This document shows positions 28,086-57,942 of a stretch of DNA of 64,000 nucleotides, one piece after another. How positions within the stretch are numbered: position 1 is the stretch's first letter; every line of letters begins with the position of its first letter. The stretch lies in contig JALMLS010000075.1 of NCBI GenBank assembly GCA_038496445.1, positions 248,001 through 312,000 of the forward strand. The letters run 5' to 3'. The notes under the pieces are model-generated. The model worked only from the letters and a program-made list of their open reading frames with translations, was not told the origin of the DNA and searched no databases. This stretch comes from Trichosphaerium sp. ATCC 40318 (lineage: Eukaryota > Protista > Tubulinea). The translations under genes were made by a program, and so were the position numbers.

Positions 28086-28145
28086 TCTCTGAGAGACAAT
28101 CCTTTTCAGCCTATGGTCAATTTTGTTAAGAGCATCTCTCAGAGA
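28086..28145. promoter_or_regulatory. Two copies of palindrome TCTCT[G/C]AGAGA (28086-28096, 28135-28145)
   Basis: Exact matches. The second copy ends 38 bp before the ATG at 28184. Confidence 0.65.
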
Positions 28146-28183
28146 TTTTTTTTGTATCTACAATCCAGTGTTAACCACAGATA

Positions 28184-29608
28184 ATGAGCAAACTCACTTT
28201 TGGATTTGAAGACAAGTTCGCACACGAAATAGCGAAATTATGTATTAGAACGTTCCTCGTGCATACGAGACAAATAAACAACAATCAACACTACATTATA
28301 GAAAAACGAAGGAGTTTAAAAGGTTTACGTTTCACCAACTACAACCAGATTTTCTACGGCTCTGAGGTCCCTAAAACTTGGAGCAAAGTAATGCAGTCTT
28401 TCAAAAGCGTTGATCCACAACAGACCAACAAGTTATACAAACAACCTGGCACAGAATTAAGTTCAAAACAAACTGAAGAGTTGCAGAGTCATATAAAATA
28501 CCTACAGGAAGAAAATCATTCTCTAAAAGAAAAATTGAAATCAACTCAAAGAGAGCTACAACAAGCAAGAAAAGAAGCTCTACAGGCGAAAAAAAATCAA
28601 AGAGAACTGAACGTCAAAATGGGTGAAGTTTCTACCAAACTACTTGACACTGAAAAGAAACACAAAGCCGCTTGTAACTACTTAAAAAACCAACGAGAAC
28701 AAGCCATTGAAACGCAAAAAACCAACCTAGCTTGGCAACAACATTGCGACATGTTGGCCAATACAGCTACAGCACAGGCAATTGAGATTCACAACCTTAA
28801 ACAGAAGATTTACAAAGATGCTGAACAATTCAAACAAACTGCAAAGGCAATACGAGAGCAGCACACGAGAGAAATGAAGGAGAAGATTGAAGAGCATAAG
28901 CGGTTTGTAGTTCGTTTGGGAGGAACTCAAAACGACGACAAAACAGCGCTGGCGTTGGAGGAGTTTGATGACTTTTGTGAAAATGTGACTGGTCTGTTTT
29001 TGGACAAATGGTGCGTCACATAATTGCCGTAAGTAGTCTAACAAGTTTGCACAGTGCTCAATTGTCTTGCAGCCCTTCTGAAAAGGATAATGTATACTCA
29101 ACACTTTTCAGTACGCTCATGATTGACTGGCCCACATTTGTTATCAACAACCGGATTACTTTCTCCTCAAATGATCTCAATAGTCCTGAAAGGTACGGCA
29201 TATTGACTCATTTTTGCAGCAACACTGATACAAATCAAGATCCACCCTATGCGCTACAATACTTTCAAATGAAGTAACTACGCTTTTTGAGCGCTACTAC
29301 GTGCGCATTGGTACGAACTTAAATAGTTTAAATATCTTATACATTTTGTAGATGACGACACTCTTGAAGAAATTAAGGATATTTGCTTTGCAGCCATCAA
29401 CCTCTATCACACAATGGAAACTACTATGAACCCTAAATTGTCATTCTTTAGACCACGCAAAACAGAGGCGTTCAACCCAGAAAGACAAATGCCGAGGCAA
29501 ACAAGAATTGTTCCTGTTGTAAGACAGCTCATGAGACCTGGTCTTGAGTGTGCTGTAACTAGGCGTGCTATAAGAAAAGCAGACGTCTTTATCGAACTAC
29601 CTCAATAA
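28184..29608 (+). CDS. Coiled-coil protein with GrpE/MIEAP-like C-terminal head, paralog G1
   Basis: Family motif EEHKRFVVRLGGTQNDD. Last exon PKLSFFRPRKTEAFNPERQ...VVRQLMRPGL...RAIRKADV. Exon structure shared with G2-G5. Confidence 0.8.
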
Positions 29609-29818
29609 ACACCTTAACGATTCCTCGCTTTGGCAAGTTGTTCTCTGAGTTTGTAGTTAGTCAAATACTACTTGTACTTGCTAAACGAATACAACACCTC
29701 TTTGGTGTTCTGGTGTACGGTTTGCAGTGAGCATATATTTTACCATTGGTGTAAAATGGATTCACAGGCGCAAGCAAACAATACTTCCTTGGACCTGCGA
29801 CACGTTCACTGAAGTTTT

Positions 29819-29829
29819 CCTCTGAGAGA
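29819..29829. promoter_or_regulatory. Palindrome variant CCTCTGAGAGA upstream of G2
   Basis: One mismatch to the motif, ending 31 bp before the ATG at 29861. Confidence 0.55.
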
Positions 29830-29860
29830 CATTGACCTATTTCTTACTTTTAACATTAAC

Positions 29861-31276
29861 ATGGCTAATAAGCACAGTAGCAAACTTACATTCCGATACA
29901 CAGCAGATTTCGCTGATACAATGGCACACAATGCGATTTGGATGCATTTATGCGCTAGAGGGTTTAATTATTCTACCTACCCAACAATTGAGCAGCATTC
30001 ATACTATCATTATTTATTTTCAACAGCAGAGGAGTTATTTACTGTGAACAGCGCTGAAAATGTATGGAAGTCAGTAAGCACTGCACATCAACGCAATGAT
30101 GGCTTTTGCCCACCAATACAAGTGAAGAGTATCCAAAACGCTTCGAAGAAAACCAACGTTAAACACCAACAGGAAGCTACAATAAACCGCTTACAACATG
30201 AACTCGCCCGTATCAAAAAAGAAAACATCAGGTTGAGGGAAGAAAACCAAAAAGCGAAAGTAACAGAGAGTGAGTTGCGTTCAAAACTCAAAACAATGCA
30301 AAGAAACAATGACATTAAAAAAAACCAAAGTCATAGTAAGTTGTTTATAGAGAAACGAGAGTGGGAAGCTGAGAAAAAAGGATTCAAAAGAGAACAGAAA
30401 CAAAACAAAGAAAAAATTGCTGACTTACAAGCTCACGTGACCAAAATTACGAAAGAGGCTAATACCAAAGTAAAGTCTCTACGAGAGCAGGGCAAAGATT
30501 GCGAGGCGAAGTACAAGAACGAACTTCAAAAGGCTTACGACACTTTGGAAGCAAAGAAAGAGGAACACAAGCGCTACATTGTTAAATTGTCCGGTACACA
30601 AAACGATGACGCTGTCCGAGACTTCTTAAACAACTATGACACTCTTGTTGATAATGTCTCTAATTTATACCTTGACGCTATGTACCACCATTTCTATATT
30701 TGTTTTACCATCTCTTTCTTACAACTGTTGTAGTCAATCTAAAGTGTTAACTGAAGAGGATAAAGTTCGTTTTTACTCAGAACTATATGGAGTTATAGCA
30801 ATAAACTGGTCAAATTTTGCGTTGAACAACAACATATTATTCAAGATAGAAGAACTAGCTAATACCCAGAAGTAAGTAGCTTATTCATTCCTGACAACTA
30901 ATTATCCTAGGCTTCAGACTGTTGTGGAAATAGTAAGCAATGAAATTTTGCTTGTATTCAAGATGTTCGATATTGGTATCGGTAAGAACTACATTGCTAC
31001 CTCGCTTATTGTAACGCGTAATTAGGTGACAGTTCTAAAGATATTAAAGACATTTCTTTGCAGGCAGTTTGGGCTTTACATACAATGGAAAGCAAGCTTA
31101 ACCCAAAAATCAAGTATTATCGTCCAAGACAAAAAGAACAATACAATCCAGCATCTCAACAATCTCGCCAAAATGCCATTGTACCTGTTGTAAAAGTGCT
31201 TATGCGACCAGGATTACAATGTGGTATCACTCAACGTATCATCAAGAAAGCAGATGTAATCACTCAACTACCTTAG
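29861..31276 (+). CDS. Coiled-coil protein with GrpE/MIEAP-like C-terminal head, paralog G2
   Basis: EEHKRYIVKLSGTQNDD, FYSELYGVIAINWS, final exon HTMESKLNPKIKYYRPRQKEQYNP...LMRPGL...RIIKKADV. Confidence 0.82.
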
Positions 31277-31450
31277 TACCTTGCACAAAATGCTTAAGTT
31301 TACACCAAAAATACTTTACTACAACAGTTTCACAGTCATGAGCGTCGTTTTAAAACAGGACTACAATAAACAAGACTGTCTCGTGCTCGTCATAATATGG
31401 TTTAGTTTATTCTGTTACACATAAAGCATCAAAACAGTTGTCCAATAAGT

Positions 31451-33526
31451 TCATTCCGATTCGCTATCATACTCAGATTCAGATTCAAATGCGCTTGCTG
31501 ATACAAAATTAGCTGTTGAATAAAAGAACTTTAGTCAACGTACTAGCGTATTCAATAGTTGCTTCATATTCACGTCCAGTGTCAACATCGCAAGCGGTTA
31601 TGTCAATAACCTCCCTTCCAAATCTCATACTTACCTCAACCATTCTGAATATTTTTCCAATTGTACTTTGAAGGCCAATACGTATTTTTCCGATTTTAAT
31701 GCATTCCCCAGTATCAACAAACTCAACATTTTTGGAAAAAGACTTGTAAAAGCGTATGGAAACCTCAGGTTGCATTGGAGACATCGGAGAAAATGTGTGT
31801 CTTATGACTTTATCGACACGCACCTCTTGCTGATAACTCACAAATTTACGGAAACCTTTAAAACGATAATAACCACCTGCAGCATAGTACTTTGGTTTTC
31901 CTTTGTCTCTAGATTCATTCCATGGCACAGCAACACGTACGCCATACGTGAACCGCATTATACGTGCTGCGATGATTGACAACTCAGCGCCTACTCTGTT
32001 GTTACCATTTTGTTTACAAGCGTCAACAATGTACCTATAAGAACTGCTCCATCAAGTGTAGCCTCACCAGGATATCTCGGTACAACTATTGATTTATTGA
32101 TTCGCTTGGAGAACTTTGAAATGATCCTGTTTTGTAACAGTAGTGAGGAGCCAAAGCCACCGACAATGAAGATGTAATCGAAGTTGCTTCCAGTTTTCTC
32201 CGCCATCGCTTTACATTGCTCCTCAACCAACTGCTCAATATTGTCCAATGTTGTTTCGAACAATAAACTAGCTTTAGGAACAATAATGGAACGTGAAGAT
32301 TTATCAAACGTGTCATTCTTGAACTGATCCAAAGAATCTAAGAACACGGAAGGTATCTAGTATAATTTTAGTTTTTCGGAAGTAAAAGCAAAAACTACAC
32401 GTACGTTATTGATAATTATACGCTTTGACTCATCTTTGACACGTATTTTAGCCTTTTGCCAGTCGGCTGACAATGACAACCATGCCTCAGGTTGTTTTTC
32501 CTTGAAGTCTGAGATCGTCTTTTCACCAAATTCGCTGACAAGAAATTTCTCAAAAGCAGCATCAATAACAGAGCTTCCATTGTGCCCTCCGGTGCCAACA
32601 GTAAGCTCAACGAGTTGATTATTTACCAACCTTGAAATAAGAATCAACTAATAAACACTCTGTAGTAGTACTTACCTATGAGCTACCAAATCTACAGTGC
32701 CGCCACCAGCGTCCAGAATAAGCAAGGTTTCGTTGTTTTGTAAACTTTTGCTTTGCCTCTCTCGCATATCAATACAATACCCAGCAGCAGCTTCAGGCTC
32801 TAGAACAAACCGAAAATTGCCTTTGTCACCCTTTTCATCAGATATCATTCCTACGGCCTTCAAGACATTAGAGTCTGAAAGTAGTACAATAAATCTGGAC
32901 ACGTACCTTTGCTGCTTTTATCATCGTAGCTTTTTCAGCGTCGCTCCAAATGGCTGGGATCGTCAAACACCACTGTATGATAAAATCCCATTCTCCTGAA
33001 CCGTAAGCGTTATCCCACTCAGATTCCAAGTCTCTCACCAACAGCTTGAGATAATCAACAATCACATCGAATGCCTTTTTCTGCTCTAATAAATTGTAAG
33101 GTTCTTGGAGCCTCCGTCTATTTTGTAGCACGTACGAGTCTTCGTAACATCATATACCATTCCACCAGGGTTTGTTTTTTCATAAATACCCATTTTGAAG
33201 TGCCTAATTTTGAAACGTTTGTATGCGAAAATTGTTGTTCAAAGCGCTTAAATATAGTTCTAGTACCTGTACAAAAACGTATTGGGGACTACAAGAGCAT
33301 CAGATCTCGCTTCAAAGCCCCACGAAACTATTTTTCCTTCCTCATCGTATAGAATCTCTGAGAGAGTTTTGACATAGGGCGTTGGCTGGCACTCCCAATT
33401 GTCCTTTTTAATAGGTTTCGAGTCATGACTGGGTTTGAAATACGCAAAACCACTGAAAGACGTTCCAAAGTCTATGGCTACTATCACGCGCTCGCGACGT
33501 TTGATTGCAGGAACAGTTGAAGCCAT
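31451..33526 (-). CDS. Divergent Hsp70, HSPA12-like (H-A), with short acidic tail
   Basis: VAIDFGTSFSGFAY, WCLTIPAIWSDAEKATM, LEPEAAAGYC, LDAGGGTVDL, VGGFGSS, RIMRFTYGV. Last exon TSAFESESEYDSESE*. No EEVD. Confidence 0.92.
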
Positions 33527-33571
33527 TCTTGTGTCGTTGAGGCACTGTACAACTTAAGTCACTAAGACATA

Positions 33572-33582
33572 TCTCTCAGAGA
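33572..33582. promoter_or_regulatory. Palindrome TCTCTCAGAGA in the 83-bp bidirectional promoter of H-A / G3
   Basis: Exact match between divergent ATGs at 33526 and 33610. Confidence 0.7.
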
Positions 33583-33609
33583 CTTTCAAGCATATTTTGA
33601 AGGGAAAAC

Positions 33610-34934
33610 ATGTCGTCAGGCTATTTGTACCAATACGATTTGAATTTCGCTAACGCAACTGCTAAATACATCATTTCGAACACCCTCTCTAAATCAAATA
33701 AAATGACCAGCGGTACTCGAATAGAACCAGCACCAAACGTTAGGGTCGCTGGCAAGCACTCTAAAGCAAAGAAACTATTTACGGAGAGTGACGCTGAACA
33801 AATACTCTACTCTCCTACCTATCGTAAGCGTGTGTCTAAATCTTCGACCCAAAGTGCTCAGCAAAAAGCTATTTGTGAAAAACAAACCCTTATAGACTCG
33901 CTCATACAGAATCAAGAACTGCTTACAAGAAAAATCGAGGAACTGAAAACAGAAAACAATAAACAAAGCAGAGAAGCACAAGCAATAATAACAACACAGA
34001 GGAACGAAATACAGTGCCTTAAAAAGCAACTTCAAACAAAACCAACACCACGTTTTTATAAGAGAGCTGATACCAAACGACAAATAAAAGCTTATACAAC
34101 CGAAATCAATACGCTCAAAGAAACAATTGCTATCAAAGAAAAGGAGAGAAAAGACCAAGTTCGTGCAAATCTTTTAAATATCGAACAAATTATTGAAGCC
34201 AATAAAGAAGATCATAAGCGATTTGTATTGAATCTATCAGGTACACAAAACAACGACAATGTACGAGAGTTTTTAGAACAATATGACCAGTTTGTTGGTG
34301 ATGTTACAGAACTCTTGCTTGACACAAAGTACAGTCCTATTTAGTCTACTCTATTTACTTATGATACTATAAGATACCCTGAGCATTTTCATGATGACGA
34401 TAAAGATGCATTCTACTCTAGAGTGTTTGGTGAACTTGCTATAAATTGGTCAACATTCTCCTTGAATCATGGCATACCGTATAAAATAGAAGAGCTAGCA
34501 GATGTTCAAAAGTACGATTTACTGTTTTTAAACCCCATACAACGCTGTACTAACGTTTAAATAAGGCAAGTCAAAGTGACAGAATACGTTAATAAATTAC
34601 TTTTTAAGCTGTTTGACACTTCTGGGATGTATCTCCGTACATCGAACTGTAAACCATTAGAATTCTGACTATTAACTTAGGCCCGGCGCTAGTAAATCTG
34701 CTGTATTCTATATCTTGGCAAGCTGTTAGTCTTGTACATACAATGGAAAGTAAACTGAACCCAAAAATCAAGTATTATCGTCCAAGACAAAAAGAACAAT
34801 ACAATCCAGCGTCTCAACAATCTCGCCAAAATGCCATTGTACCTGTTGTAAAAGTACTCATGCGACCAGGATTACAATGTGGTATCACTCAACGTATCAT
34901 CAAGAAAGCAGATGTAATCACTCAACTACCTTAG
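33610..34934 (+). CDS. Coiled-coil protein with GrpE/MIEAP-like C-terminal head, paralog G3
   Basis: EDHKRFVLNLSGTQNND, FYSRVFGELAINWS. Final 63 residues identical to G2. Confidence 0.82.
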
Positions 34935-35239
34935 AATAAACAACCTTTTTCTTTTGAATGAAGATGTGATACGTTTCAAGCGTTATGTTGGACTAGACAA
35001 TACTGACAATACAAAATCGGACAATAGATCGAACAATGGCAAGTAGCAAAGAATCTAAAATCCTTTTTCTTTTTGTTGTATTCCATTTTCTTTCAACATT
35101 GCATCTCACGAGTGTCTATAATGTAGAATAAATCCGCTCGTGTGGCTAGACCAGAGTAGCCAAAGACTGAGCGTCTTTCTACCAGAGGCGCCCTTCGATT
35201 GTATAGTCAACGTCAGTCCAATCTAACAAGTATGTAAAA

Positions 35240-35271
35240 TCTCTCAGAGATAAAAACAATTCTCTCAGAGA
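35240..35271. promoter_or_regulatory. Tandem palindromes TCTCTCAGAGA x2 upstream of Hsp70 H-B
   Basis: Exact matches at 35240-35250 and 35261-35271; ATG at 35308. Confidence 0.7.
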
Positions 35272-35307
35272 CTTTTCACTGTATTTTCAAAAACCAAGTT
35301 TGACTCA

Positions 35308-37185
35308 ATGGCAGCAACACCTCTTAAACGATCTGGTGTACGCTTTGTCGTAGGCCTAGACTTTGGAAACAGTAGTACTGGATGCGGCTTTATAGACTTG
35401 AGCGACAAACGTGAAGAGTTTCATGTATTAAACCTTTCTGGAACTCATGCAAGCTACGACAAGGATGTAAGTGCGATACTTCTCAAGAAGAATGAAACTG
35501 GATGGAAACTAGCAGCTTGTGGTATGGACGCGAAACTAGACTACATGAGTAACGAAGGAACCTCTACAACCCTTTTTTACACCGAGAGTATGAAAGCTCA
35601 TTTGGGGAAAGAAGTCTTCAACCACACTGCGACGACAGATACAATAGACGTTGAGTTTGTAATTTCTACGTACCTTGCTTGGATTAGAGAGACTGTTATG
35701 AAAGAGCTCGGAAAAGAAATGACGGGTGTCGATGCTCACGAACACGTTCGTTGGGTGTTCACTGTGCCAAACAATTACTCAGAAGAACAAATCGAAGCGT
35801 ATAAGAAGTGCATTATTAAGGTAAACCATTTTTTCTCTTTGGTTTGTTTGATTATGTATTGATTCATTGTTGTAGGCTGACTTCGTCGCGAAAGAGGGCG
35901 TTTCTGAAGAATTCTTGATGCTTGTTTCTGAAGCAGAGGCAGCTTCCGTTTATTGTCTGAAAGAGAAGGAGATTACACCAGAAGATGTCTTCTGTTTGTT
36001 GGTAATTGCTTCACTGCTTTAATGATTCTGACGTTATATTTTAGGACGCTGGTGGTGGCACGTGTGACATTACCACGTACAAAGTATCAAAAGGCTCAAA
36101 GCTAGAAGAACAAGCAGCAAAATCCGGTGAGAATATTGGATCAAAACTTCTTGATGAACGTTTCGTGTCACTTCTCAAGACGCGGTTTTCTGAAGAGACT
36201 ATTACGGATATTGCAAAAGAACACGGCGCTGCGTATTTAAAGTTCCTCTTTGCATGGATCACTGCAAAGGAGTCGCAGATAAACGGATACAAAGCAAGAA
36301 ACGTACCTCTTGGAGCACTAGTAGGGCCTCTTATTGAGAAAGGTGTATCAGATGAAGACGTGAATAGAGTGGCTTGTGTAAGAGTAAGTAACATCTTATA
36401 GTATCTACAAGTATTAATCGTACCAAGGTAACGGCAGAGAACATTCATACTATCTACGACAAAACATGTGATTCTGTTTGTACTTTTCTTCAAACTCATA
36501 TCGAGGAAGCTAGTAGCGATGGTATCTCTATTAAGGTACGATCTCATTGATACACATTAAACCGATAATATCGCTTACTATTTTAAAGCAAGTTTTCGTT
36601 GTCGGAGGCTTTGGAAGGAGCAAAATCCTTGCCGATAAGATAACCAAAAAGTTAGCTGTAATTGGGATATGCAAAGACCATATCAAGTTTCAAAAGTACT
36701 CTGGTCGTAGTGCGATGGCCGGAGCTGCGTTCATTGGTAAAGATCCTTCACTTGTACGTCTTAGAAAGATGGATAGAACGTACGGTATAGAAGCCTGTCA
36801 GGTGTATATGCCAGAGTTCCATGACGATTCTTTACCAAAAGTCATAAAAAACGGTGATTTCTACATTGAAAAGTTGTTTGAGTGTTTTGTTCAATACAAA
36901 CAACAGATTGAATTAAACCATACGGTGTCGAAGACATTTGACGTTCCTTCAGGCGCTTCTAGTCTCATTATTAAGCTCCTCAAGTCGTACAAAAAGAGCC
37001 CTATGTTGACGACAGACAGCAGTGTTGTTGAATGTGGACGTATTTTAGTACCTCTTTCAAGACCAACGCCAAAGACAATCACCATCGATTTCTGTCTTGG
37101 TAAAGTAGATATCTCAGTCAAAGCTTTTTTGAAAGACAGCGAACCTCAAGAAAGTAAAATTGGTTTCAACCCAAAATTCTGGTAG
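35308..37185 (+). CDS. Highly divergent Hsp70, HSPA12-like (H-B)
   Basis: VVGLDFGNSSTG, WVFTVPNNY, VSEAEAASVYC, LDAGGGTCDIT, VVGGFGRS, RKMDRTYGI. Confidence 0.85.
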
Positions 37186-37459
37186 TTCAACAATAAAAAA
37201 AAAAGATTCTTCTTTAAGTTGTTCTTTACTATCCATTGCATCTCTTTTTTTTTTTACTAAATGCTCCATATGTTCTACGCCTAGAAACATTTACGAACTC
37301 AAAAACAGTTCAAACCGCTGACAGTTTCCAAGCGGAGCAAAACAATGAGTTGGAAAGTAGTTTTGCACGTGCTTCCAAAACGTTATTGAAAATTTTATTT
37401 ATTGATCCGGCGCATTGCAATACTCTGCAAGTTCTCATTGGCGCTTTTTTCACCTTAGT

Positions 37460-37885
37460 CTAGCATCTGGGGACAGAATAAAATGCCAGTCTGAGCCAAA
37501 GACACCGAGCTACAAATGTGACGTTAACTCCTTTTCGTAAAAAACCCGACACCCAACTTACCTTGTCTGGTAGCGCTACCGGAGGATCAAGAACAGTTCC
37601 GTCGTCTTTAACGCCTGCAATTTTGACAATTTTTGCTTTATCAGATAGCACAGACCATACAGCATCTGCTGTCGGTGGTTTAGCTCCTTCAATCTTGATA
37701 TCGTTTGTGATATAGTTGTGTGGGCGATAATCAGCGTCAATAAGCTCTACTACAACCGATTTTACCTTCCCAGCGTCTCCATAGATATGTAGGGTTGCTC
37801 TTGGACTCTAAAGTACAAAATTACAACTAACGTGGATAAGATGTTGTAAACGCACTTCAAACTCGTGTTGGATCTTATCGGACAT
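37460..37885 (-). CDS. Hypothetical small protein
   Basis: MSDKIQHEFE, an intron, then an open exon (LHIYGDAGKVKSVVVELIDAD...). No family recognised. Confidence 0.45.
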
Positions 37886-38083
37886 CACGTGACTATTCTG
37901 AAAAATGGCGAAATTGCCAAAACAGACTTAATCAGTACGACTTACGGCAATCAAACCTTGCACTTAAATAGCTTCCTTTGGTAAATCGAACTTTTTGTTT
38001 GGTATTTACAACGTTACAGCCATGTCTGTAGGCATCGGACATTGTTTTCTATTTACAAGATTTTTTGTTGTGTACAGATTAAT

Positions 38084-39254
38084 TTACATAGCGGCACATC
38101 CTCGGAATTTTTTTCTTGGTTTTTTGTGCATATCAAGTACACTATCTACTGCCTCTCCAAAAACTACGCAAACAAAACATCAAATCACGTCGTTACAATT
38201 TTTTAATGGAAGTACCTTCTTTTACGCCCCATCCATTCTGAGCGCTAGTTTCAACGTAACTGTGTGCCTGGGTAATGTTGATTAGAATTTCGAAAATTAT
38301 CCAAAAACAAAAATAGTTTACTCGTATTTCCTTGGCTAAAAGAATGCCTTTTATCTGTGATATACAGTCTATAGAATCTTTCACTCGTGTATCAAGCTTT
38401 GTACCAACTAATATAATGGGTGTATCAGGACAGTAACGTCGTAACTCCAAATGCCACTAACAAACGAGTGAATTTCTCTTCGAAACACAGAAAATAAAAT
38501 CCAGTTTAATTTCTTTGAAAGGACAAATGCTCTATTAATACTATACCAGTGCGTATATTGTACCTTTTGTTCTATATTTTCATATGATTTCCAGTCATCT
38601 ATAGCAAAACAAAGCAAAAACACGTGCTACAGAGTTCCATCAATAAGAATTCAAATAAAAATACAAAAAAAAACCCATACTGCTCCAACATAGTCTAAGG
38701 GCCTCAATCTATCGTATTGCTCAAGACCTACAAAACGCTTATCATTACTTAACGCCTACAATACCAAATACTGTATTCCATGGTAGTTACAGCGATTTAA
38801 CGCACCTGCAGTATCCCATAGACCTTGATACAGGTTTAACAATGAAGTAAAAATAAAATAAAAAGAGTACCTAATTCCACGTGTATCGCATCAGAGCACG
38901 TGAGATTTACACTATTCACGCATTAATGCAAACAAAAAAAACAAAAGGAAAATAGAAAATACAAATTATTACATACACAAATGCGTCAAGGAGTGTAGGG
39001 ACATATGTATCCGAGAAGTGATCTGAAAACACGTTTAGAAAAAAAAATATCAAAAAAAAAAACTTAAACTCAATTAAAGCACGTGTTGTCGCCTGGTAAT
39101 AACGTACTTTTTGTGTATCTTATTAATAAAGACGTCTTACCTAAACGTTGAATTAAGTATGTATCATGGGTCCACTATTGTTTAATGTACCAACTTGACC
39201 GTCACCCACTATCACAAGCTTAATACATCTGCTGTTGGTACTTTGTTTTGACAT
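38084..39254 (-). CDS. Rac/Rho-family small GTPase with Leu at the Q61-equivalent position
   Basis: [46 protein letters not shown], polybasic tail and CAAM prenylation motif. Confidence 0.92.
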
Positions 39255-39389
39255 TTAACAAACTTTATTTTCCTACGCACAAAAGTCAACATTAGTATCT
39301 TGTAAATTACTGTTGCAAGAAAATACTAGCCGGAGAAATTAGGTCACTACTGAAAAACTACTAGAACCATCGAAACGAGCTCGTAACGG

Positions 39390-39520
39390 ATTGTGACGCT
39401 TTGGCGAGACTAGATTGTTTCGGTCTTGGGCGAAAGTACTTGATTTTCGGATTCAGTTTACTTTCCATTGTATCTAGCAAGACTGACTTGGAAGAAATAG
39501 TGTACACAGTCAACGTCACA
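39390..39520 (-). pseudogene. Orphan fragment of a G4/G5-type GrpE-like last exon
   Basis: cggtcttgggcgaaagtacttgattttcggattcagtttactttccattgtat is nearly identical to 51381-51433 (TMESKLNPKIKYFRPRPK), then degenerates with a deletion. Confidence 0.85.
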
Positions 39521-39587
39521 TTTTAGAACAGATTTTTATTAATTTGACAAGGAAGGCAACTGATTTGTATTCGTTGTTTTCAACCAA

Positions 39588-40947: not shown

Positions 40948-41676
40948 GTTAATGCCTATCATAATACTGCAGTCAAAACGCGAAGCAATGTGGCAACAGT
41001 AAACTGGAAAACAAATAACGAAAAAAAAACCATGTGCACTCGAGAAATAATTGTAACGAAAACTTGAATGGTCTAAAAACTGCTGTAAAATCGAAAGACG
41101 AAGCAAACCGGAAGAAATATCTAACCGACGAAATTCTTGTAAGTTTCGGAATACTCTTTTTTGTATTATTTCCAAAGTGTTGTTTTATACTGTACGAGGC
41201 AGCTTGAGTTGAAAAAATACGAATAGTAAAAATATAGGATGAGTGTAGGCGAATTAATCTCTGGTTAGTGGAAGCTTCTATTTAAGAATTAAATAAGAAG
41301 AGAGCCAACATCTATTAGCGAAGTACTTGATACTTGTCTTCCCATTGGGTTTTTGATGAGGCTTTTTGTATTGGTACATGAGAGAAATCAAGTGAAATAC
41401 AACCGAAATGTTGGGAGTAAATTGTGAGAAATATGTTTCCACACGTGTGCTCATGAACTCCTAATGAACTCATATATTTTTCTCTACCTCCTATTTAACG
41501 TAATTTCATACAACGTCAAGTCGTTAATACGACAAATATATAAGAAGAACATGAAGAATCATTTGTAGGATATCAATTGTGAAAATTGTTAAAAAGTGGA
41601 CATTTTACAAATCTCAAACGCGTATTTTATGTGTACTTAACCAAACTGAATTTCATAGTAGGACAGACGTATTTTA

Positions 41677-44971: not shown

Positions 44972-45135
44972 ACAGCTTAAAACAATGTTACGTAATGTAG
45001 CAAGCCTTTGAGTGCGTTCCATTCACTCTCTATTTTGTTCTCAGGTACAATAAATACTAGTACGAAATTATCATAGTAGACGCAAAGAGATAAATATTGG
45101 TACATTTTGAACAAATTGAGGTAAATGCGTGTACT

Positions 45136-47647: not shown

Positions 47648-48173
47648 CTCGGTTTATCTTGTAACCTAAAAAAGGCGCTTATGGACAGTCAGAGAACTAA
47701 TGAACGCAAAGGGACAATGCGGCATCATCGGATTGTAATTGGTCGTTTGGTGGCGGTCAACAATACGGCTCCAGACAAGCGCTTGGTACACTTGCTCTAC
47801 TTTTTGAATCAGCTTCAACGTGATATACAGTGTTCACAGTTACAATAGTGCCAGAGCTCAATAATTCAACCTTATACGACCAAGATGTTCTATTTACTGG
47901 AGCTATGAAAGAAAATAGTGAGTAGTCTGCTATTCCTAGTGGTAGAAGAAGGTCACGTTGCTTACCTAATGTGCGACGAACCCAACCACTATTGGTTCTA
48001 TATCTTTGATTCTACCTAAGATCCTGACGCTAACAATAGGTACGACACCTCAACAATGTGATGGAGCATGTAGAAAAGAGTGGTAGGTTTCTGGAAGAGA
48101 AGATACTGATTAACTTCGCAAAGTAATGTTGTAGCTCAAAGTGTTTCTGTGATGTACCTTGACGCGTTATAGC

Positions 48174-48934
48174 TATTGTCCGTATCATTCAAGTTTGCGA
48201 CAGGTTTGGCAGAAGTATCAAAGTGTAAGATCTTGTAAGTTCTGCTAGTTCTTGCAGGTTCTGTCAGATTTTGTCAGTTTTGATAGTTCTTGCAAGAACT
48301 GACAGCTTTGATAACAACTTAGCGGAACCAGTGCAATGTGAATGCATCACATTCTACAACTCATGACAATGTACCGTGCTTGCCGCACTTATGTACAATA
48401 AGGCAAGACGAAAAAGCAATGTGCCAAAAGTCATATCATTAATAATGATTTACTGTTAACTTACTAGCACCAGGCTTGAATTCTGGAACCTATTCAGGCG
48501 TAAAGAGGAGTATTAACCGCGAGAAAACGTTAGAACCTCAAAGAAAATTTCAAGCGCTTCCAAAGTATCTTGGGCTGAGCGTACGGTATTAACATAGCGT
48601 AATAATCTTTTTTAGAGTATAGGAGACAACTGTTGGATCTCATAGGTAATCAGAGACGTTAACAGAACTACACTAATGTACCAAATAAAATAATGGTTAA
48701 AAACACGTGGTCACAATAATATGTATGCGTTGTAGACGTGGATTTAGTTTTTTACCAGAACTGACAAGATCCGTCAGATCTTGTAGATTTTAGCAGATCT
48801 TGCAAGAACTAACAAGATCTTGTAAGAACTAACAGAAGTTGCAAGATCTGTCAGATCTGACTAAACACGAAAACCAAAAGTCACAATTAGCAAAAAGCTG
48901 CACAGATTAGCAAACTTGAATGATACGGACAATA
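48174..48934. mobile_element. MITE / non-autonomous DNA transposon with TIRs and TA flanks
   Basis: Perfect inverted repeat tattgtccgtatcattcaagtttgc (48174-48198) / gcaaacttgaatgatacggacaata (48910-48934), whose outer TA may be the TSD. Arrays of ~10-bp subterminal repeats (tcttgcaagaact, ctgtcagat). No transposase. Confidence 0.8.
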
Positions 48935-49049
48935 CGTCAGTGCTACTTAATAAGCAGTTCTTTTAACCTATATCTACAACGTACATAACAGTTTCTACTC
49001 GTGGAAAGTAATAAAAGTGCTTTGGAGACAAGTAAAAAAAAAGTGGCAA

Positions 49050-49297
49050 CCTCAAGATGCGAATTGTGTTTTTCATCAACTTAAAAATTGATTCAAAAGG
49101 TTTTCGTGTTACACTTTTACTTACATTTTCTTTTGCTCAGTCTGGTTCAATGTGCACAGAAACTTTCATCTTCATCCTTAGGATCTCAGTATTTTGGAAG
49201 CGCTTGCCAAGGCATAGTGCTGTTTCTAACCCACAACAACTCCCAGCTGTTCATCAAATTTTCTTATGAGATTGCCTGCTAACATTACAGAACGCGA
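49050..49297 (-). repeat. Third, more diverged partial copy of the duplicated segment
   Basis: Matches ~46445-46725 (gttcaatgtgcacagaaact, gcgcttgccaaggcatagtgctgtttct, gagattgcctgcta). Confidence 0.8.
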
Positions 49298-49559
49298 CTG
49301 ATATTCCAACTGCATGTTGCTGCAGGTTCAGGTTACAGGACTTAGTTGGTCGACTGTTAAGTCTCCAATTGAACGTGTAACACACAATGGACAACCTCCC
49401 CGTAGAGTTGATTTTAACAATCCTTGATTTCATTACGATACCCTCAAATCTCCAAACTACGAAAAAAACCAGCAGATTATTCGAATCGCTTACAAAAGAG
49501 ACTAAACTGTACAAAGTGCGATTTTTTATATCTAATATCACGTTTTAACCATTTTAGAG

Positions 49560-50822
49560 TCTTTCTGCCGTTTATACAGTTAAAGCCGTGACAGGCAGCC
49601 ATGAAAAAGGTCTCATCGATGGCAAGTATCTCTTTCCACGTATCAAAGCTTTTTAAACAAACAACCTAGGAGACGCGAAAACTGCCCGTTTTATGATGCA
49701 CGAGGCATAGCGTTTGACAAGCAAGGCGATGTACGCGTTTACTTGTAACATAGTGATAATCAGGCAAAATATTTATTTAGATTGTTTTAGATGATATAAT
49801 TACTGACAATTCAAATCATCTACTAAGAAAGTTGTGTATGTTTACAGGGATTGTAAGCACTGTTGAGTGTACAAAGAGTAAAGTGGAATTTCCACATGAT
49901 GTAGCAGTTGATAGTGATGGTAACATCTTAATTGCAGATGCTTCACATAGTGCACGTGTTTATTTTTTTTCCTTTTTTTTCTATTTTTTTTTTGTCTCTA
50001 CTCATTCCCATGAGACACTGTCTTCACATGTAAAACTAAAATGGTATTTGGTAATGTGTTGGCTTTAAAATTTTACTTTTAATGGTGGTTGTGCTGTTGC
50101 ACAATACATTTACTAGCGCATGAAAAAGAATGTGGCTCGTCTTGTTTAACTTGGCCCCACACCAATCCAAGCATATTTTTTGGACTTGTGGTATACACAG
50201 TTGATATTAATACTTTCTTTAGCGTATTATGTACATTGAAGCTGCTACTGGAGAGTTAAAGTTGTTACATAAGGAAAGACAAGGTGGTTGGCTTAGAAGT
50301 GTTGCTATTTCTCCTGAAGGGTATATTTGTTATGCAAACAGCACTAGAAACTGGGTACGCGTTAGTTGTGGTATATCAAGTGCATCAACACGAAATCCGC
50401 CACCTTTGGGGCAAATTGAGTTAGCAAATGCAAGGAATGTTGTGACAGACGATAACGGAAATATCTATGTTTCAAACTTTGATACTTTGGGTGTTGTCCC
50501 TCACAATGATAAACTACGTTTATATCCATTTAAGCTAGATACCTTAAGTCGATTATGCTATGTCAATGGTAAGACGAAAACCTAAATTAAATCAAATATT
50601 TTGTACTGTGATTACTTGTTCTAATTTTTTTTCATTGAAGGAAGTTTGATTTTTGGCAGTAGTAATAGGATGTACAGACTGTTTGTTGAAAATGAGGAGC
50701 TGATTGAAATAAACCTAGAAAACATAAACAATATGGTGAACATTAACAGTATTGTATATCACGACAAGATGCTGTACTTTTCGCATGACAACAGAATAAG
50801 CAAAATAGATATTATTTTGTAA
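49560..50822 (+). CDS. NHL-repeat (beta-propeller) protein, possibly pseudogenised
   Basis: DG..DAKTARF/DARGIAFDKQGD, ITDNSNHLLRK, FPHDVAVDSDGNILIAD. Apparent 1-nt frameshift in the T run at ~49690. Start not found. Confidence 0.65.
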
Positions 50823-51236
50823 AGCAAAAATTATGCGTAACCTTATGAAATAAAATTTATGCTCTGTTGCAAAGCATCGGTATCCATTATAGTAGATTGG
50901 TTATGCCTTGGTTGTCTATTGGACGAAATTTACACCCGATTCGTCTTTATGTGTATGAAAAGTAAGTTGTTTATTGCTATGAATATCACAAATTAAAGCT
51001 ATCATTTTCAAGTACTCGAGACATACCCATTCTAGTTAGCCATTATGTTCCTATCACTATGAAACACCTTATCTTAAACCGGTCATCGATATTGTTAGAC
51101 ATCCAAATAACTGTCAGTAGACTTGTCACCTAATTGTGCACGCACTCAGTCGCCATAAAAAGTCATAATAATCGTTTGCTCGCTTTGTCAGTACATGACC
51201 ACAAACATTCCACTGTTTGTAAATACAATATTTATT

Positions 51237-52752
51237 CTAAGGTAGTACAGTGATTACATCTGCTTGCTTGATGATACGTTGAGTAATACCACATTGTAGT
51301 CCTGGACGCATGAGAAGCTTTACAATAGGTACAATCGCATTTTGACGAGATTGGTGAGATGCTGGATTGTATTGTTCTTTCGGTCTTGGACGAAAGTACT
51401 TGATTTTCGGATTCAGTTTACTTTCCATTGTATGTAGCAATGATACTGCCTGCGAAGAAATATTGCTTATTGTCAATTCCATGTTTTCGTCTGTTTAAAA
51501 ATTAATATCATTACATTGAATAGTGGCTTCGTACCTTTCTCAATCTGGTATGTAGTAAGAACTTTTGATACTGATGCATAGACAAGTAAAGATATGTACT
51601 GGTGCCTGTTAAGAAACTGTTAAGAAAGTAAGAGATAAAAAGCAGACTGATAAGCGTACTTTCGAGGATCATCTAGCTCTTCAAGTTTAAAAGGTATCTT
51701 ATTATTGAGCGAAAATGTTTGCCAATTAATAGCAAGAACGTCAAACAATGCTGAGTAAAAAGAATCACTCTTGTCAGTAGGTAAGTGAGCTGAACCCCTA
51801 AATAAAAGGTTAAAAACGTGTTAGAGGTTTACTCACGTGGCATCCAGAAACAGATTAGTAACATTGTCTACAAACAATTCATAGTCATGCAAAAAGTCTC
51901 TGACGCTATCGTCGTATTGTGTTCCCGATAGCTTGATCATAAAGCGTTTGTGTTCCTCTTTTTTTTTCTCTAAGGCATCGTAGAACTTACGTTGCACAGT
52001 TTGAAGCGCATTCTCATGATACTCCTTGTTTTTCTTGAGCTCTTCTTTCAAACACGTGATTTTTTCTTCAGCTTCTGTTTTCGCTTTTCTTTCCTTGTTG
52101 ATAGCTTCAGTACGTACGCGTTGAAGATCTTTAGAGTGACGATATTTAATTGTAATCAACTCTTCTCTCAGAGACTTGACGTGAGTGCTTCTCGGTTTTT
52201 CCTTTGCAATTCTCTTTTCTCTTTGGCCTGCTTCGCTTTTAGTTTTTTGAAACCTTCCTTTGCTTGTTTACGCTGATTCAGTCTGTTGTCTTTCTCTTCT
52301 TTCAATTGTTGTTTAAGTTCTTCAATTGTAGCGCCTACAGTTTTCTCCAGGGTGCTTTTGATATCCAGTTCTTTGTTCAACGCCTTGTTTTCTTCTTTGG
52401 CTACACGTAAAAGAGTGTTTAAATCCTCCTGCTCGCTTACAAGCGAAAATATTAGGCGAGTTTTTTCTTGGAGCAAAGATTTTTCTTCTTTCGGTACTCG
52501 TATATCTCCAACTTGTACGGAGGCTGCACGGGCACGTTTTTGAACTATTACTGATCCCCAAACCTCGGTAACTTGTTTATCAGTTGAAAAAAATCGATCA
52601 GATGGCTTTGATTGTCCAAATATGGTGTAGTTTGGCGCAGGGGTAATGTTGATGCTTTTTGAGGTGTTTGTCCTGGTTTGTGCTAGATAGACTGAAAGAG
52701 CCTTTTTAACAATTGATTTAGCGAAGCGTTGGCTATATTCATACTTTTCCAT
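51237..52752 (-). CDS. Coiled-coil protein with GrpE/MIEAP-like C-terminal head, paralog G4
   Basis: MEKYEYSQRFAK...; EEHKRFMIKLSGTQYDD; last exon PKIKYFRPRPKEQYNPASHQ...LMRPGL...RIIKQADV. Confidence 0.82.
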
Positions 52753-52791
52753 GGCGTTTGTTTTCAAAAAAAAAAAAGAAGAATCTACTTG

Positions 52792-52934
52792 TCTCTGAGA
52801 CGTTTTCTTCACTGAACTTTGATGTTACAGTACACCTTTTCTAAACCGATAAATAATTCGTTTCGGTTTACATAAAATGGTACATTGTAGATTCTTGCAT
52901 AGATAACTGTTCCCAACATATAATCTCTGAGAGA
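52792..52934. promoter_or_regulatory. Bidirectional promoter G4 / H-C with TCTCTGAGA(CG) (52792) and TCTCTGAGAGA (52924-52934)
   Basis: Partial and exact motif copies between divergent ATGs at 52752 and 53058. Confidence 0.6.
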
Positions 52935-53057
52935 TAATACCTTAAAAAAGCTATGTACTCTCTCCCAGTCTATTTTGAAGCAACTGTACTATAACATGAC
53001 TGAACCAAAAAAGGTTGTAAGACTTAACAACTGATATTAATCTACCAAATATTACAA

Positions 53058-55983
53058 ATGGCAACTGCTACTCCGGCTATAAAGCCCCGTGAACGTATTG
53101 TCGTAGCTGTAGACTTTGGTACTTCGTTTAGTGGGTTCGCATACTTTAAACCTGGGCATGATACCAAACCGATTAAAAAAGACAATTGGGACTGTCAACC
53201 AACACCATACGTAAAGACCCTCTCAGAGATACTTTACGATGAGGGTGGAAAAATTGTTTCTTGGGGATACGAAGCTAGATCTGACTCTCTTATAGTCCCA
53301 AATACGTTTTTATACAGGTACTGAACTACATAACAAGAATACCCCTTCTTCCAGAGAAATCTCTGTTAATTGCTACCTAGGCACTTTAAGATGGGAATTT
53401 ACGAAAAAACGAACCCTACTGGCATGGTCTATGATGCTACAAACACTCGTAAGTTGTCTACCTTTGATTCGAATTTATGTGTACATCTTTTCAAGGATTA
53501 ACTTTTGATTTAGAACAGAAAAAGGCTATTGATGTGATTGTAGACTACCTCAAGTTGCTTGTACAAGACTTAGAGTCTGAATGGGATAACGCATATGGTG
53601 TTGGGCAATGGGACTTTATAATCCAATGGTGTCTAACAATTCCAGCTATTTGGAGTGATGCCGAAAAAGCGGCAATGATAGAAGCTGCAAAGGTACCTAA
53701 AAGCAACTACCCATTCTGTCACGTGCTAATTGTCTTGGAGGCTGTTGGCATGATATGTGATTCTAACGGTGGTATGAGTAACTTTAGGTTTGCTCTAGAG
53801 CCTGAAGCTGCAGCTGGGTATTGTATCGACATGCGCGAGAGACAAGGACGAAAACTGCGAAACAATGAAACTCTTCTCGTTTTAGATGCTGGTGGAGGAA
53901 CAGTCGATTTGGCTGCTCATAGGTAAGCGGTAGTTACTGTCGGTGTGATACTGATATTCCAATGTAGGTTGGTACAAAACCAACTTGTTGAACTCACTGT
54001 TGGAACCGGTGGTCATTTTGGAGGCTCCAAAATCGATGAAGCGTTCGAACTATTTCTGTCTGACACCTTTGGTGAACCATTGATCAAACAATTCAAGGAG
54101 GACCAACCTGAGGCGTGGCTATCATTTTTAGCGAGCTGGCAAAAGGCTAAAATACGCGTAAAAGATGAATCAAAAAGGATAATCATTAACGTAAGTGAAT
54201 TTTCGGAAAATCTTTCAACATGTAAGTTTTTTTTTAGGTTCCGCCTGCAATGTTCGCTTTGTTGAGTAAGCTTGAGAAGAGTAGTGTATTTGACAAATCT
54301 TCTCGTTCTGTTATCATTCCTAAAGCGAGTGTATTGTTTAAAAGCACTCTAGACAACATCGAAAAGTTGGTTGAAGAGCAATGTAAAGCTATGAAAGAGA
54401 AAACTGGAAATAACTTCGATTACATCTTCATTGTCGGCGGTTTCGGGTCTTCTGTTCTTCTGCAGAACGTAATTAAATCCAAGTTTTGTTCACGTATCAA
54501 TAAGGCAATTGTTGTTCCGAGATACCCTGGCGAAGCTACACTCGATGGTGCAGTGTTAATTGGTAATCACATTTTTTTAATTGTTGCTCGGCTTTGTTAC
54601 TGACCTTTATACCAGGAGCGGATAAGTCGATTATTGCAGCACGTATTATGCGGTACACCTATGGAGTAGAATACACACGTAGTTTTGATGTTTCGAGCGA
54701 TGATATAGCGAGGAAGAAACGCTTTCCAGGCCGTAGTGAAGATGTTTGTGTACGCTGTTTTGATACTTTTGTAAAGTATCAAGATGAAGTCCACGTGGAT
54801 AATGTGATCAAACGGAAGTATCAAGCGGTTTCCCCAAAGCAAGGCATCATTCAAATCAACTTCTTCAAGTCATTTAGCAAATCAGTTAAGTACGTTGATG
54901 CTGGAGAATGTGTTAAGCTCGGTGCTATATCTGTCGATATTAAGAGTACTATTGGGCAAGAAAACCGAGAAGTTGAAGTCCAAATGTCGTTTGGAAGAGA
55001 GCTCATAACTATTACTGCTGTAGATATCAATACCAAAAAAGAATATGATGCGAGTATAAAGTACTCAAGTGCGTCAACATGCACAGAAAACACACGTGTC
55101 GCTTTGTTTTTTGATGTTGTTTATAGCGAGTCTCTTTGAAACAGGTGAATTAGAAGAACCGGAAAACAAGGCTATATCTTTAGACGTATGTTTTGTTATT
55201 GACGTTACCGGTAGCATGGGAAGATATATTGATGGTGTAAAGAAAAATGTTCCGATAATCGTTAAAAACATAGTTGAAGCATGCTCTTGCTTTGGTCATT
55301 CTGCTACAATTCGAATGGCTCTTGCTATGTACCGAGATTTTGTAGATGGTGCTGATAGACTCTCAGGAATTGATTTCTGTCAGTATAGTCCCGACAAGAA
55401 TGAAGACGAATTGAAAAAGGTAGTAGTTGTTGATTCATTCATTCTCACAATATTGTAAAGGTTATTTCGAAGTTGAAACATACCTTCGCTGAAGGCGGTG
55501 GCTCTCCTCCTGAAGAAGATGTGATTGGTGGTTTAGACTACGCCCTATCTTATTCATGGACAGCTGACAAGAAAGTGATGTTTCTCATTGGTGACGCACC
55601 TTGTCATAATCCAAAGGTTAGTATAAACCAGTAAGAAAGAAACCTAATGCTCTTTATAAGTACTCTGGGAGGACATCCGGAGATACGCATCCTGATGCCT
55701 ATACCACTGGGTTTGTTAATCCAGAAAATGTTTTGTCGCACATTAGAAATCAAGGTACATATGACTATCCTTTTTGTCTTAACTTTCGATAGAAATTGAG
55801 CTATTCTTCATAAAGTTGAATGAGTCTACCAACTACATGATAAACTACTTTAAGGGTATTTATGATACAGACGAGCGTAAATTAGAAACCATGAATATGG
55901 TCAATGCCACAAGCAGTGTCGAGATTAATAGGCTGCTTGGTGAACACGTGACAGCAACACTGGTTGCAACTCTGTTTAAATAG
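53058..55983 (+). CDS. Divergent HSPA12-like Hsp70 fused to C-terminal vWA domain (H-C)
   Basis: Close paralog of H-A. After the intron at which H-A enters its tail, the frame continues into LDVCFVIDVTGSM (MIDAS), YRDF, EGGG..PEEDVIGGL, FLIGDAPCH. Confidence 0.88.
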
Positions 55984-56365
55984 TAGCCAGCTCAACTAAT
56001 TACAAATAAATCCCACACTGAAAGTAAGACCTTTGTTGTATTAAGCTGTAGTATTATACGTCTGTAAAACATGTGGGACATATTGATTGTGTTGCTCTTT
56101 GTAACGAGTATAAACAGAATAAAATTATACTTGACAGCAACATGATCTTGTTTTTGTATTATACAATAACTTGTGATAATCGTCTTACACAACTGTTGTC
56201 TAGCAATAAACGCTTGGCGGTGGAACCAAAAGCCAACAATATTTCACTTGAAATCCATTTGTACTACACAACAACTCATTCTTTTCGTCAAGGCATAACA
56301 ACTCAATAGTAATTTTCGGCTTTATTCTTTTGGAGCATTTTCGTCGAATGGTTAATTAAGTACAC

Positions 56366-57894
56366 TCATTTTTGAATGGCACCTTCCCCAGAATTATTTT
56401 GGGCAACAATGGTGGCCGGTACTCGTGGAGTTAATCCGTCTCCTGGTAGTATAGTGATTACATCTGCTTGCTTGATGATACGTTGAGTAATACCACATTG
56501 TAGTCCTGGACGCATGAGAAGCTTTACAATAGGCACAATGGCATTTTGACGAGATTGGTGAGATGCTGGATTGTATTGTTCTTTCGGTCTTGGACGAAAG
56601 TACTTGATTTTCGGGTTCAGTTTACTTTCCATTGTATGTAGCAATGACACAGCCTGCGAAGAAATCTCATGTATCGTTCTTTTAGTTTCCTCGTCTAAGA
56701 ATCCATCAGTAACATAAATAGTGCAAGACTGCTTACCAAGTATGAAGCTAAACGACTTAAACAGCTCGAAAACCGAGTCTCGTACAAGCTGTGATACAGT
56801 CTCAAGCCTTTGTATTACGTTAGATGTGATAGCGTTAAATCAACTTACTTTTTGGGGTCGTCAAGGTCTTCCACTTTGTACTGGAGCTTGTTGTTAAGAG
56901 CGAAGGTTGACCAATTGATAGCAAGAACGCCAAACAACTGCGAATAAAAGAGACTGCTCTCTTCATCTGCGATTGATGTCACCGACCTACAAGTTATTAA
57001 TATAACAAAGTCCACATGGAGAAAAAACCTAAACCCATACGTTACATCAAGATAGAGATTAGATACATTGTCAAAGAACGTTTCATATTGCTCCAAAAAA
57101 TCGCGAACACTGTCATCGTTTTGAGTACCAGAGAGCTTGACCATAAAGCGTTTGTTCTCCTCTTTCTTGGTCTCCAAAATATCATTAAACTTCTCTTGGG
57201 CTGTTTGTAGTTCTTTCGTATGCGACAGATGGTCTTTTTTGATTTTATCTCTGAGAGACTTTACTTCTTTTTGGGCTTCTATTTTTTCTTTTCGTAGCTT
57301 GTTGACTGCGTCACCGTGCTGTTTCTCTAGCGTTGTAATACGATCTTTCAAAGCCTTTTGGTCTCTCTTGTTGGCACGTTGTTCGCTTCCAAGTTTGTTT
57401 TTTTCGGCTTCCCATGCTCTCTTCGCGGTTTGGTGGGTAGCTCTGAGTTCTCGGAGTTTACTGGAATGGTCTGAGTCATTCTTTCGAATTTTTGATCGCA
57501 GGTCGCTCTCTATCGCCTTTGACTTAGCTTTCTCTTCCTTTAGCTTGATGTTCTCTTTCTTGACGCTTGCTAGTTCATCTTTTAACGCTTTTAGAGTAGC
57601 TTGGAGATCGTCTTGTTCTTTTTTTTGGTTTTGTAGATGTTGGTCCCATGTTTGTTGTTGATGCTCGCTTGGTTTGCTACCTTTGCAGACGGTATTCCAT
57701 ACTTTCTTTACGTCATCTTTTGTAAACAACAAGCCAGACGGACCAAAGATCGAGAAATATGGCGCAGCGCTAATTTTAGCGTAGTGAGCGTGATTGAAGC
57801 CGCTCGTACGCAAATAATTCCAAATTACAGTCTCCGCTATACCACGAGCAAATCCAGCCGAGTAAACGTAACTATCAGTACTAATTTCAGCCAT
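56366..57894 (-). CDS. Coiled-coil protein with GrpE/MIEAP-like C-terminal head, paralog G5
   Basis: EENKRFMVKLSGTQNDD, FYSQLFGVLAINWS. Head nearly identical to G4 plus a ~25-aa extension. Confidence 0.82.
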
Positions 57895-57931
57895 GTGTAG
57901 GTAATGATGAAGACGTTTTTAAAGTGACTAA

Positions 57932-57942
57932 TCTCTGAGAGA
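57932..57942. promoter_or_regulatory. Palindrome TCTCTGAGAGA upstream of G5
   Basis: Exact match 37 bp upstream of the minus-strand ATG at 57894. Confidence 0.7.

Follow-up and report, generated by a model that had tools for sequence, protein, structure and literature searches.

The 64,000-nucleotide stretch analysed here, termed the window, is from contig JALMLS010000075.1 (positions 248,001 to 312,000) of the amoeboid protist Trichosphaerium sp. ATCC 40318. It contains two blocks of related genes, at 28-37 kb and 51-58 kb, which carry five coiled-coil paralogues (G1-G5) and three Hsp70-like ATPase genes (H-A, H-B and H-C); about 14 kb of unrelated genes lie between the blocks. An 11-letter palindrome, TCTCT[C/G]AGAGA, is restricted to these two blocks within the window, and it may well be a promoter-proximal regulatory element of the genes it precedes. 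The genes are as follows.

28184-29607, plus strand: G1, an orphan coiled-coil gene; conserved KLSGTQNDD block, C-terminal exons
29861-31276, plus strand: G2, with spliced transcripts and introns of 39-81 nt
31365-33526, minus strand: H-A, a gene for an Hsp70-like ATPase of the ASKHA fold; seven short introns are mapped
33610-34934, plus strand: G3, an orphan coiled-coil gene, spliced and transcribed
35308-37185, plus strand: H-B, a divergent Hsp70-like ATPase paralogue whose transcript contig begins at 35307
51237-52752, minus strand: G4, a coiled-coil paralogue whose frame is broken near 52170 (intron or defect)
53058-55983, plus strand: H-C, an Hsp70-like ATPase; vWA part at the C terminus (end coordinate approximate)
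56366-57894, minus strand: G5, the longest G paralogue, with a first open reading frame (ORF) of 349 amino acids (aa)

The paralogues show 23-57% protein identity. A word search found no relatives of the G proteins, a protein atlas gave weak coiled-coil look-alikes only, and an exhaustive profile search of 1.84 billion representatives yielded one 3006-aa protein in which the coiled-coil part alone matches; G is therefore treated as an orphan family. The H exons, scanned singly, give sub-threshold matches to HSP70 (E 0.061), FGGY_C (8e-4), BcrAD_BadFG (0.01) and a DnaK chain (E 0.8), and H-C has a match to VWA_4, also sub-threshold when exons are scanned one at a time (E 1.5e-4). The motif-free neighbours and flanks encode a kinase, an ammonium transporter, an OST-alpha-like transporter and a beta-helix protein.

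Ten exact matches to the palindrome are found in the window, against 0.04 expected from dinucleotide-preserving shuffles, none of which reached ten. They start at 28086, 28135, 33355, 33572, 35240, 35261, 52164, 52924, 57248 and 57932. Two further copies, at 29819 and 53219, appear when one mismatch is allowed, and at the two-mismatch level the window is at background (16 extra matches vs about 13). The palindrome lies 27-45 bp ahead of the ATG in seven of the eight G and H genes, the outlier being H-C at 123 bp. The copies outside coding regions, to which no strand is assigned, are these.

28086-28096: distal G1 copy, exact, 87 bp from the G1 ATG
28135-28145: proximal G1 copy, exact, 38 bp from the ATG at 28184
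29819-29829: G2 copy with one mismatch (CCTCTGAGAGA), 31 bp 5' of the G2 ATG and mapped 5' end
33572-33582: single exact copy common to H-A and G3, 45 bp to H-A and 27 bp to G3
35240-35250: distal H-B copy, exact, 57 bp 5' of the ATG; the proximal copy is 21 bp away
35261-35271: proximal H-B copy, exact, 36 bp from the ATG at 35308
52792-52802: partial G4 copy with two mismatches, 39 bp 5' of the G4 ATG
52924-52934: exact copy between G4 and H-C, 123 bp to the H-C ATG and 171 bp to the G4 ATG
57932-57942: G5 copy, exact, 37 bp 5' of the G5 ATG

Every copy listed in an earlier note on this DNA is present, the one at 52792 that it called partial having two mismatches, and its distances to the ATG (G1 38, G2 31, G3 27, H-A 45, H-B 36, G4 39, G5 37 and H-C 123) agree with those found here. 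The same note had not seen the motif upstream of other genes in the window; window genes outside the G and H families indeed have no copy with zero or one mismatch.

The copy at 28135 together with its flanks forms a 13-bp palindrome. The ATGs of the divergent H-A and G3 genes are separated by 83 intergenic bases, which contain the one copy that the two genes share. The 123-bp stretch from the motif to the H-C ATG (52935-53057) contains two short upstream ORFs. As the distance is 45 bp in H-A, the closest paralogue of H-C, H-C could have gained an insertion or could have a long leader.

Four more copies lie inside genes, again without assigned strand, and are probably incidental. The three that are exact had been placed at about 33356, 52165 and 57248 in the earlier note.

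33355-33365: exact copy in H-A exon 1, encoding TLSEI; probably incidental
53219-53229: H-C exon 1 copy with one mismatch, encoding TLSEI; its position corresponds by homology to 33355
52164-52174: exact copy in G4 at a frame break, either coding for KSLRE or within a possible 47-nt intron, at its start
57248-57258: exact copy in the G5 coiled coil, encoding KSLRD; probably incidental

In the copy inside H-C, a synonymous T-to-C change disrupts the palindrome. In G4, a TGA within the motif copy breaks the reading frame (52129-52175). Removal of a 47-nt GT..AG intron, whose donor would be unusual, or of a 35-nt intron further upstream would restore the frame; otherwise the gene is defective.

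RNA evidence consists of assembled contigs from three public runs, and start sites are read from the ends of contigs, plus one end with an oligo tag. Spliced contigs, with introns of 39-81 nt that have GT..AG ends, show G2, H-A, G3 and H-B to be real, expressed genes. In two runs the first base of the G2 contig coincides with the A of the ATG (29861), with zero depth upstream; in one run this 5' end is preceded by a SMART template-switch oligo tail. For H-B, a single base (35307) precedes the ATG in the contig. Each of these 5' ends is on a C-A step, and the motif is found 31 nt (G2) and 35 nt (H-B) upstream of them. Since the motif lies upstream of these ends, it would act there as DNA and not as part of the mRNA. 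The earlier note proposed that the motif stands at a fixed distance from the ATG. A narrow spacing of 27-46 bp is indeed found and H-C, at 123 bp, departs from it; as the mapped mRNAs have almost no leader, what is kept constant is probably the distance to the transcription start rather than to the ATG.

Nearly leaderless mRNAs are thus apparent for G2 and H-B in an intron-rich eukaryote. If mRNAs that start at the ATG are general, they would bear on translation initiation in this lineage. In addition, the long first ORF of G2 contains an 81-nt in-frame intron (30270-30350) that is both spliced and retained in the same runs, and is exitron-like.

These transcripts also bear on a possible function at the RNA level, in which the palindrome would form a small hairpin or bind a protein within the first exon or the 5' leader. 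Some RNA does include the motif at 33572, as can be concluded from a spliced contig that runs from H-A into G3; copies lie within the G4, G5 and H-A transcripts, and in a group of BTB genes elsewhere in the genome (on contig C39, see below) the motif is in an apparent mini first exon right after the ATG. However, the G2 and H-B transcripts begin 31-36 nt past the motif with zero depth upstream, the possible stem is just 4 bp, a synonymous change breaks the in-gene copy of H-C, and the absence of a strand preference suits recognition of DNA. An RNA-level role is thus very improbable.

The genome searched comprises 70.3 Mb in 642 contigs. It has 123 sites with the exact palindrome and a central C or G, whereas the reversed word has 13. 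From order 0-4 Markov models, for which 333 kb of the genome served as training data, 24-36 exact sites are expected (Poisson p < 1e-29). Genome-wide, the exact palindrome is in 4-9 times excess. Related words fare differently: there are 64 sites with a central A or T (54 for the reversed control), 100 with a two-base spacer (64 reversed), 78 with no spacer (34 reversed) and 949 with exactly one mismatch (741 reversed). The word is sharply defined, a strong excess being found for the exact form with a one-base C/G centre only. Ten of the 123 sites are within this one window (p about 1e-16).

Some of the genomic sites are redundant. Pairs of 3-kb segments around sites on different contigs are 97-100% identical (L001/L025, L020/L058, L038/L053, L041/L049, L057/L059 and L045/L056), with several site pairs at 98-99%, and these are probably uncollapsed haplotypes (haplotigs). 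Haplotig pairs raise the genome-wide word counts by about a tenth, and the total of independent sites is approximately 105-112. When 101 sites are grouped, they fall into 84 clusters, with no flanking sequence or repeat family common to them. The flanks show a weak A-A-R preference on each side, which carries almost no information.

The position of the palindrome relative to ORFs was determined from a profile of 92 non-redundant sites, 82 outside the window and ten inside. ORFs of at least 100 aa that point away from the motif start within 0-100 bp of it in 18 cases, compared with about four per 100-bp bin elsewhere. ORFs of at least 120 aa begin at 15-75 bp from 16 of 101 sites, against 1.7% of background positions, and the effect persists when sites outside the window only are counted (10 of 82; p = 1.4e-6). 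About one site in six is clearly promoter-proximal. No peak was found around the sites for short ORFs or for ORF ends. A genome-wide scan with a positional test was the check that the earlier note had put forward, and it reveals both the enrichment and a bias towards positions just before long ORFs.

Most sites are not promoter-proximal, and this raises the question of whether the word is abundant for reasons other than transcription, e.g. a coding bias towards SLR[DE] or LSE, or a target for recombination or mobile elements, with the promoter cases a minority by-product. Coiled-coil genes can encode the word as KSLR[DE], and several sites are in short repeated segments. On the other hand, only about a third of sites are in long open frames, which is slightly under background; the 84 clusters among 101 sites and the nearly information-free flanks show that no flank or repeat family unites the sites; and the peak at 15-75 bp before ORF starts is left unexplained. 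We consider a cause of this type quite improbable.

The carriers elsewhere in the genome are of several kinds. The G family is confined to the window cluster, apart from a partial copy of G5 on contig C60 (L027, G000:C60:38946-39091). This copy comprises the G5 promoter and the first 32 codons (184 bp at 93% identity); the duplication is recent, the rest of the gene is absent, and the motif is at 39 bp. A second orphan family, termed F, has an N-terminus that resembles MDNxTLLKKI and has no Pfam match. The F proteins are 30-44% identical, and the motif is 31-46 bp ahead of the N-terminus at all five loci. A Pfam search of G, F and several other carriers gave nothing above threshold. The carriers are listed below, with distances from motif to gene where these were noted.

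C220:73708-74810 (L045): divergent pair of F genes with two motif copies 69 bp apart; haplotig on C463
C10:542290 (L064): F member, motif upstream
C367:13151 (L085): F member; an ATG is 4 bp after the motif, and the homologous N-terminus begins at a GTG
C127 (L035): F member, a decayed copy, motif upstream
SET-MYND gene: motif at 16 bp
BTB gene: motif at 65 bp; first ORF of 114 aa, a looser case
F-box gene: motif at 56 bp
PARP catalytic domain gene: motif at 72 bp
Further coiled-coil protein gene: motif at 56 bp
C37:77206-83560 (L078, G000:C37:77206-83560): sacsin-domain gene, motif at 133 bp, outside the proximal range; a looser case

The sacsin gene has two more motif copies in a segment duplicated about 1.75 kb downstream (approximately 96% identical over the 230 bp that surround the motif). 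Four BTB-like paralogues are found on contig C39: L021, L084, L022 and L023 (G000:C39:225834, 234695, 262954 and 293835, respectively).

Thirteen promoters of the G, H and F genes can be compared directly. The distance from motif to ATG is 37.5 ± 5.7 bp (range 27-46), and in a multiple alignment the motif columns alone are invariant, in keeping with the earlier observation that the surrounding promoter DNA cannot be aligned. The central base shows no preference with respect to gene direction (13 C to 9 G), which fits a symmetric reader. A search for a second common promoter element gave no k-mer that survives multiple testing. A word of the form CT[GT][TA]A[AC][AC]A (e.g. CTTAAACA) is present 27-30 bp upstream of the motif in four of 23 promoters, namely G3 (33572), G4 (52792), G5 (57932) and one F gene (L045:1501), but it was noticed post hoc and is non-significant once corrected for multiple testing. 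The base profile upstream of 37 motif-free ORF starts shows a faint T-rich stretch at -25 to -30, from a sample that is too small.

As G, H and F are all paralogue families, the palindrome might be looked at as a functionless remnant of promoter duplication. The recent transfer of the G5 promoter and 32 codons to C60 illustrates such an event, and many of the genome sites are haplotigs or recent duplicates. It should be pointed out, however, that the paralogues diverged long ago (23-57% protein identity), with nothing else alignable in their promoters, that the same word is at the same distance in three unrelated families and in several single genes, and that the genome excess is peculiar to the exact form centred on C/G. 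A mere remnant is extremely unlikely.

Taken together, it appears reasonably likely that a symmetric, sequence-specific factor recognises TCTCT[C/G]AGAGA as a promoter-proximal site, and that the palindrome marks a small regulon of mostly species-specific genes. Protein binding, a dimeric reader and co-regulation are predictions from over-representation, position and promoter conservation. Most likely, a symmetric (homodimeric) transcription factor would bind the palindrome. The element lies 27-46 bp (mean 37.5) upstream of the start codon, which is apparently also the transcription start in the two genes with a mapped 5' end. Because the word is palindromic, one copy can serve a divergent pair (H-A/G3), and several promoters carry two copies. 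The set of genes so marked would comprise G, H (one with a vWA part) and F, together with single PARP, SET-MYND and F-box genes and, less securely, the BTB and sacsin-like genes. The kinds of carrier (chaperone-like, PARP, BTB, F-box) invite speculation on a role in stress or defence.

Several findings weigh against a regulon-marking site. About four fifths of the examined genome sites are away from any detectable gene start, and 29 of 92 sites are in long open frames, compared with 37% for random DNA. Surroundings were read for 92 sites outside the window, with 20 sites on contigs C43 to C218 left out. The excess of the exact word relative to the one-mismatch word is sharper than is usual for transcription factor sites. 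With respect to transcripts, the 5' ends are taken from assembled contigs; the oligo tail is also found at an internal G3 position, 34098, and so is no proof of a cap site; and one spliced contig spans H-A exon 1, the intergenic region with the motif at 33572, and G3. The BTB genes on C39 have an ATG followed directly by the motif, in an apparent 25-nt first exon (MSLRD..), and then a short intron. Their motif would be transcribed and translated, which is a misfit to an upstream element; these genes represent one duplication lineage. Lastly, G is without relatives elsewhere, and conservation of the motif was assessed within one genome only.

The earlier note had proposed that a dimeric factor binds the palindrome and defines a regulon. 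This is still the best-supported reading, given the excess, the positional peak, promoter conservation, the lack of an orientation preference and the location upstream of mapped 5' ends; what detracts from it is that about four fifths of genome sites are not promoter-proximal.

The main rival is a core promoter element that replaces the TATA box, read by the basal machinery or by a dedicated adaptor, from which transcription would begin some 31-45 bp further on, along one strand or both. It is compatible with a regulator site. The narrow ATG distance (27-46 bp in 13 promoters of three families), mapped 5' ends at 31 and 35 nt past the motif on C-A steps, the lack of an obvious canonical TATA box between motif and ATG, and the divergent pair served by a single copy all agree with a core element, and the vertebrate CGCG element TCTCGCGAGA acts likewise (PMC6192621). 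Yet the carriers number just a few dozen genes. Other carriers have the motif at 10-72 bp, and two at 123-133 bp, and from one and the same copy G3 would need a start at 27 bp and H-A at 45 bp. The tandem copies, 21 and 49 bp apart, suit an activator site better, and several promoters have T-rich, TATTT-like stretches between motif and ATG. A core element seems unlikely on balance. A more elaborate proposal joins the two ideas: a dedicated symmetric factor would replace TATA in a two-way module and place the start at a distance of about 37 bp on either strand, to give leaderless mRNAs from an inducible stress or defence regulon of almost wholly species-specific genes. The genes in question are those for orphan coiled-coil and F proteins, Hsp70-like/vWA ATPases, and sacsin-, PARP-, BTB- and F-box-type proteins. 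This proposal is doubtful.

The regulon-marking reading is of interest in that an 11-letter word would tie three otherwise uncharacterised families into one candidate regulon. To our knowledge, gene control in free-living amoebae beyond Dictyostelium and Entamoeba is almost unknown, and a sharply defined word is a direct experimental handle on the reader protein and on the condition that induces the gene set. A literature search for the exact words across about 8.4 million papers returned primers and unrelated uses only, and no description of the element.

Several known elements can be set aside. A classical heat-shock element, which needs at least three alternating nGAAn/nTTCn units, was rejected, as the word has no GAA or TTC unit; the earlier note had likewise excluded it. 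That note also saw a geometric resemblance to STAT-type sites, which is not borne out. The gamma-activated site (GAS) of STAT, TTCN3GAA, is like the palindrome an odd-spacer dyad, but its half-sites are TTC and GAA; with arms TCTCT/AGAGA vs TTC-N(2-4)-GAA, the odd spacer is the sole likeness, and a GAS site was rejected. STAT proteins do exist in amoebae (PMC4206453). A six-frame genome search for the STAT DNA-binding domain (STAT_bind) was empty, and was uninformative because the control was silent too. An initiator was rejected, as the G2 and H-B 5' ends are 31 and 35 nt downstream of the motif. A TATA box was also rejected, since the arms are half C/G and the centre is at -37 (G2) and -41 (H-B) from the mapped ends.

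Among the amoebae, the Entamoeba core promoter has a TATA-like box, a GAAC box and an initiator (Inr); the region at -30 is rich in T/A and the start is a YA (PMC8874941, PMC5842622). Entamoeba resembles the present organism in being an amoeba with a compact genome, and the starts mapped here are also on C-A steps; the palindrome differs in that it matches none of the Entamoeba promoter elements and occurs on few genes.

Basic leucine zipper (bZIP) sites of the AP-1/GCN4 type have the sequence (A)TGA[C/G]TCA(T). They share with the palindrome an odd-length dyad, a single C/G centre, a weak outer A/T preference and independence of orientation. The half-site is TGA, not TCTCT, and the length is 7-9 bp, compared with 11-13 bp.

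In Drosophila, the DNA replication-related element (DRE; TATCGATA) works with DREF and TRF2, and in nematodes the X-box and RFX define a cilia regulon. Both are likewise palindromic promoter-proximal words with a constrained distance to the start, a defined gene set and a dedicated factor. Sequences, readers and gene sets differ from those of the palindrome, whose own role is a predicted one.

By analogy, the nearest described element in both sequence and behaviour appears to be the vertebrate CGCG element, which is bound by ZBED1/hDREF and BANP. The CGCG element, TCTCGCGAGA, reads as a palindrome, lies close to the start in TATA-less promoters and works in two directions (PMC6192621). It is 10 bp in length, with a methylation-sensitive CGCG centre, and is found at housekeeping and ribosomal-protein genes in CpG islands, whereas the palindrome described here is 11 bp, has a T-[C/G]-A centre and no CpG, and is found at species-specific families in an amoeba-like genome. 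Membership in the CGCG class was rejected, as the centre is T[C/G]A and there is zero CpG. The likeness lies in a short perfect palindrome with TCTC...GAGA arms, in its position next to the start, and possibly in divergent transcription from one copy: here one copy lies between the H-A and G3 ATGs and two lie between the F pair. The palindrome would thus be a promoter-proximal cis-element of a familiar kind that uses a new word, with a function predicted from its sequence context.

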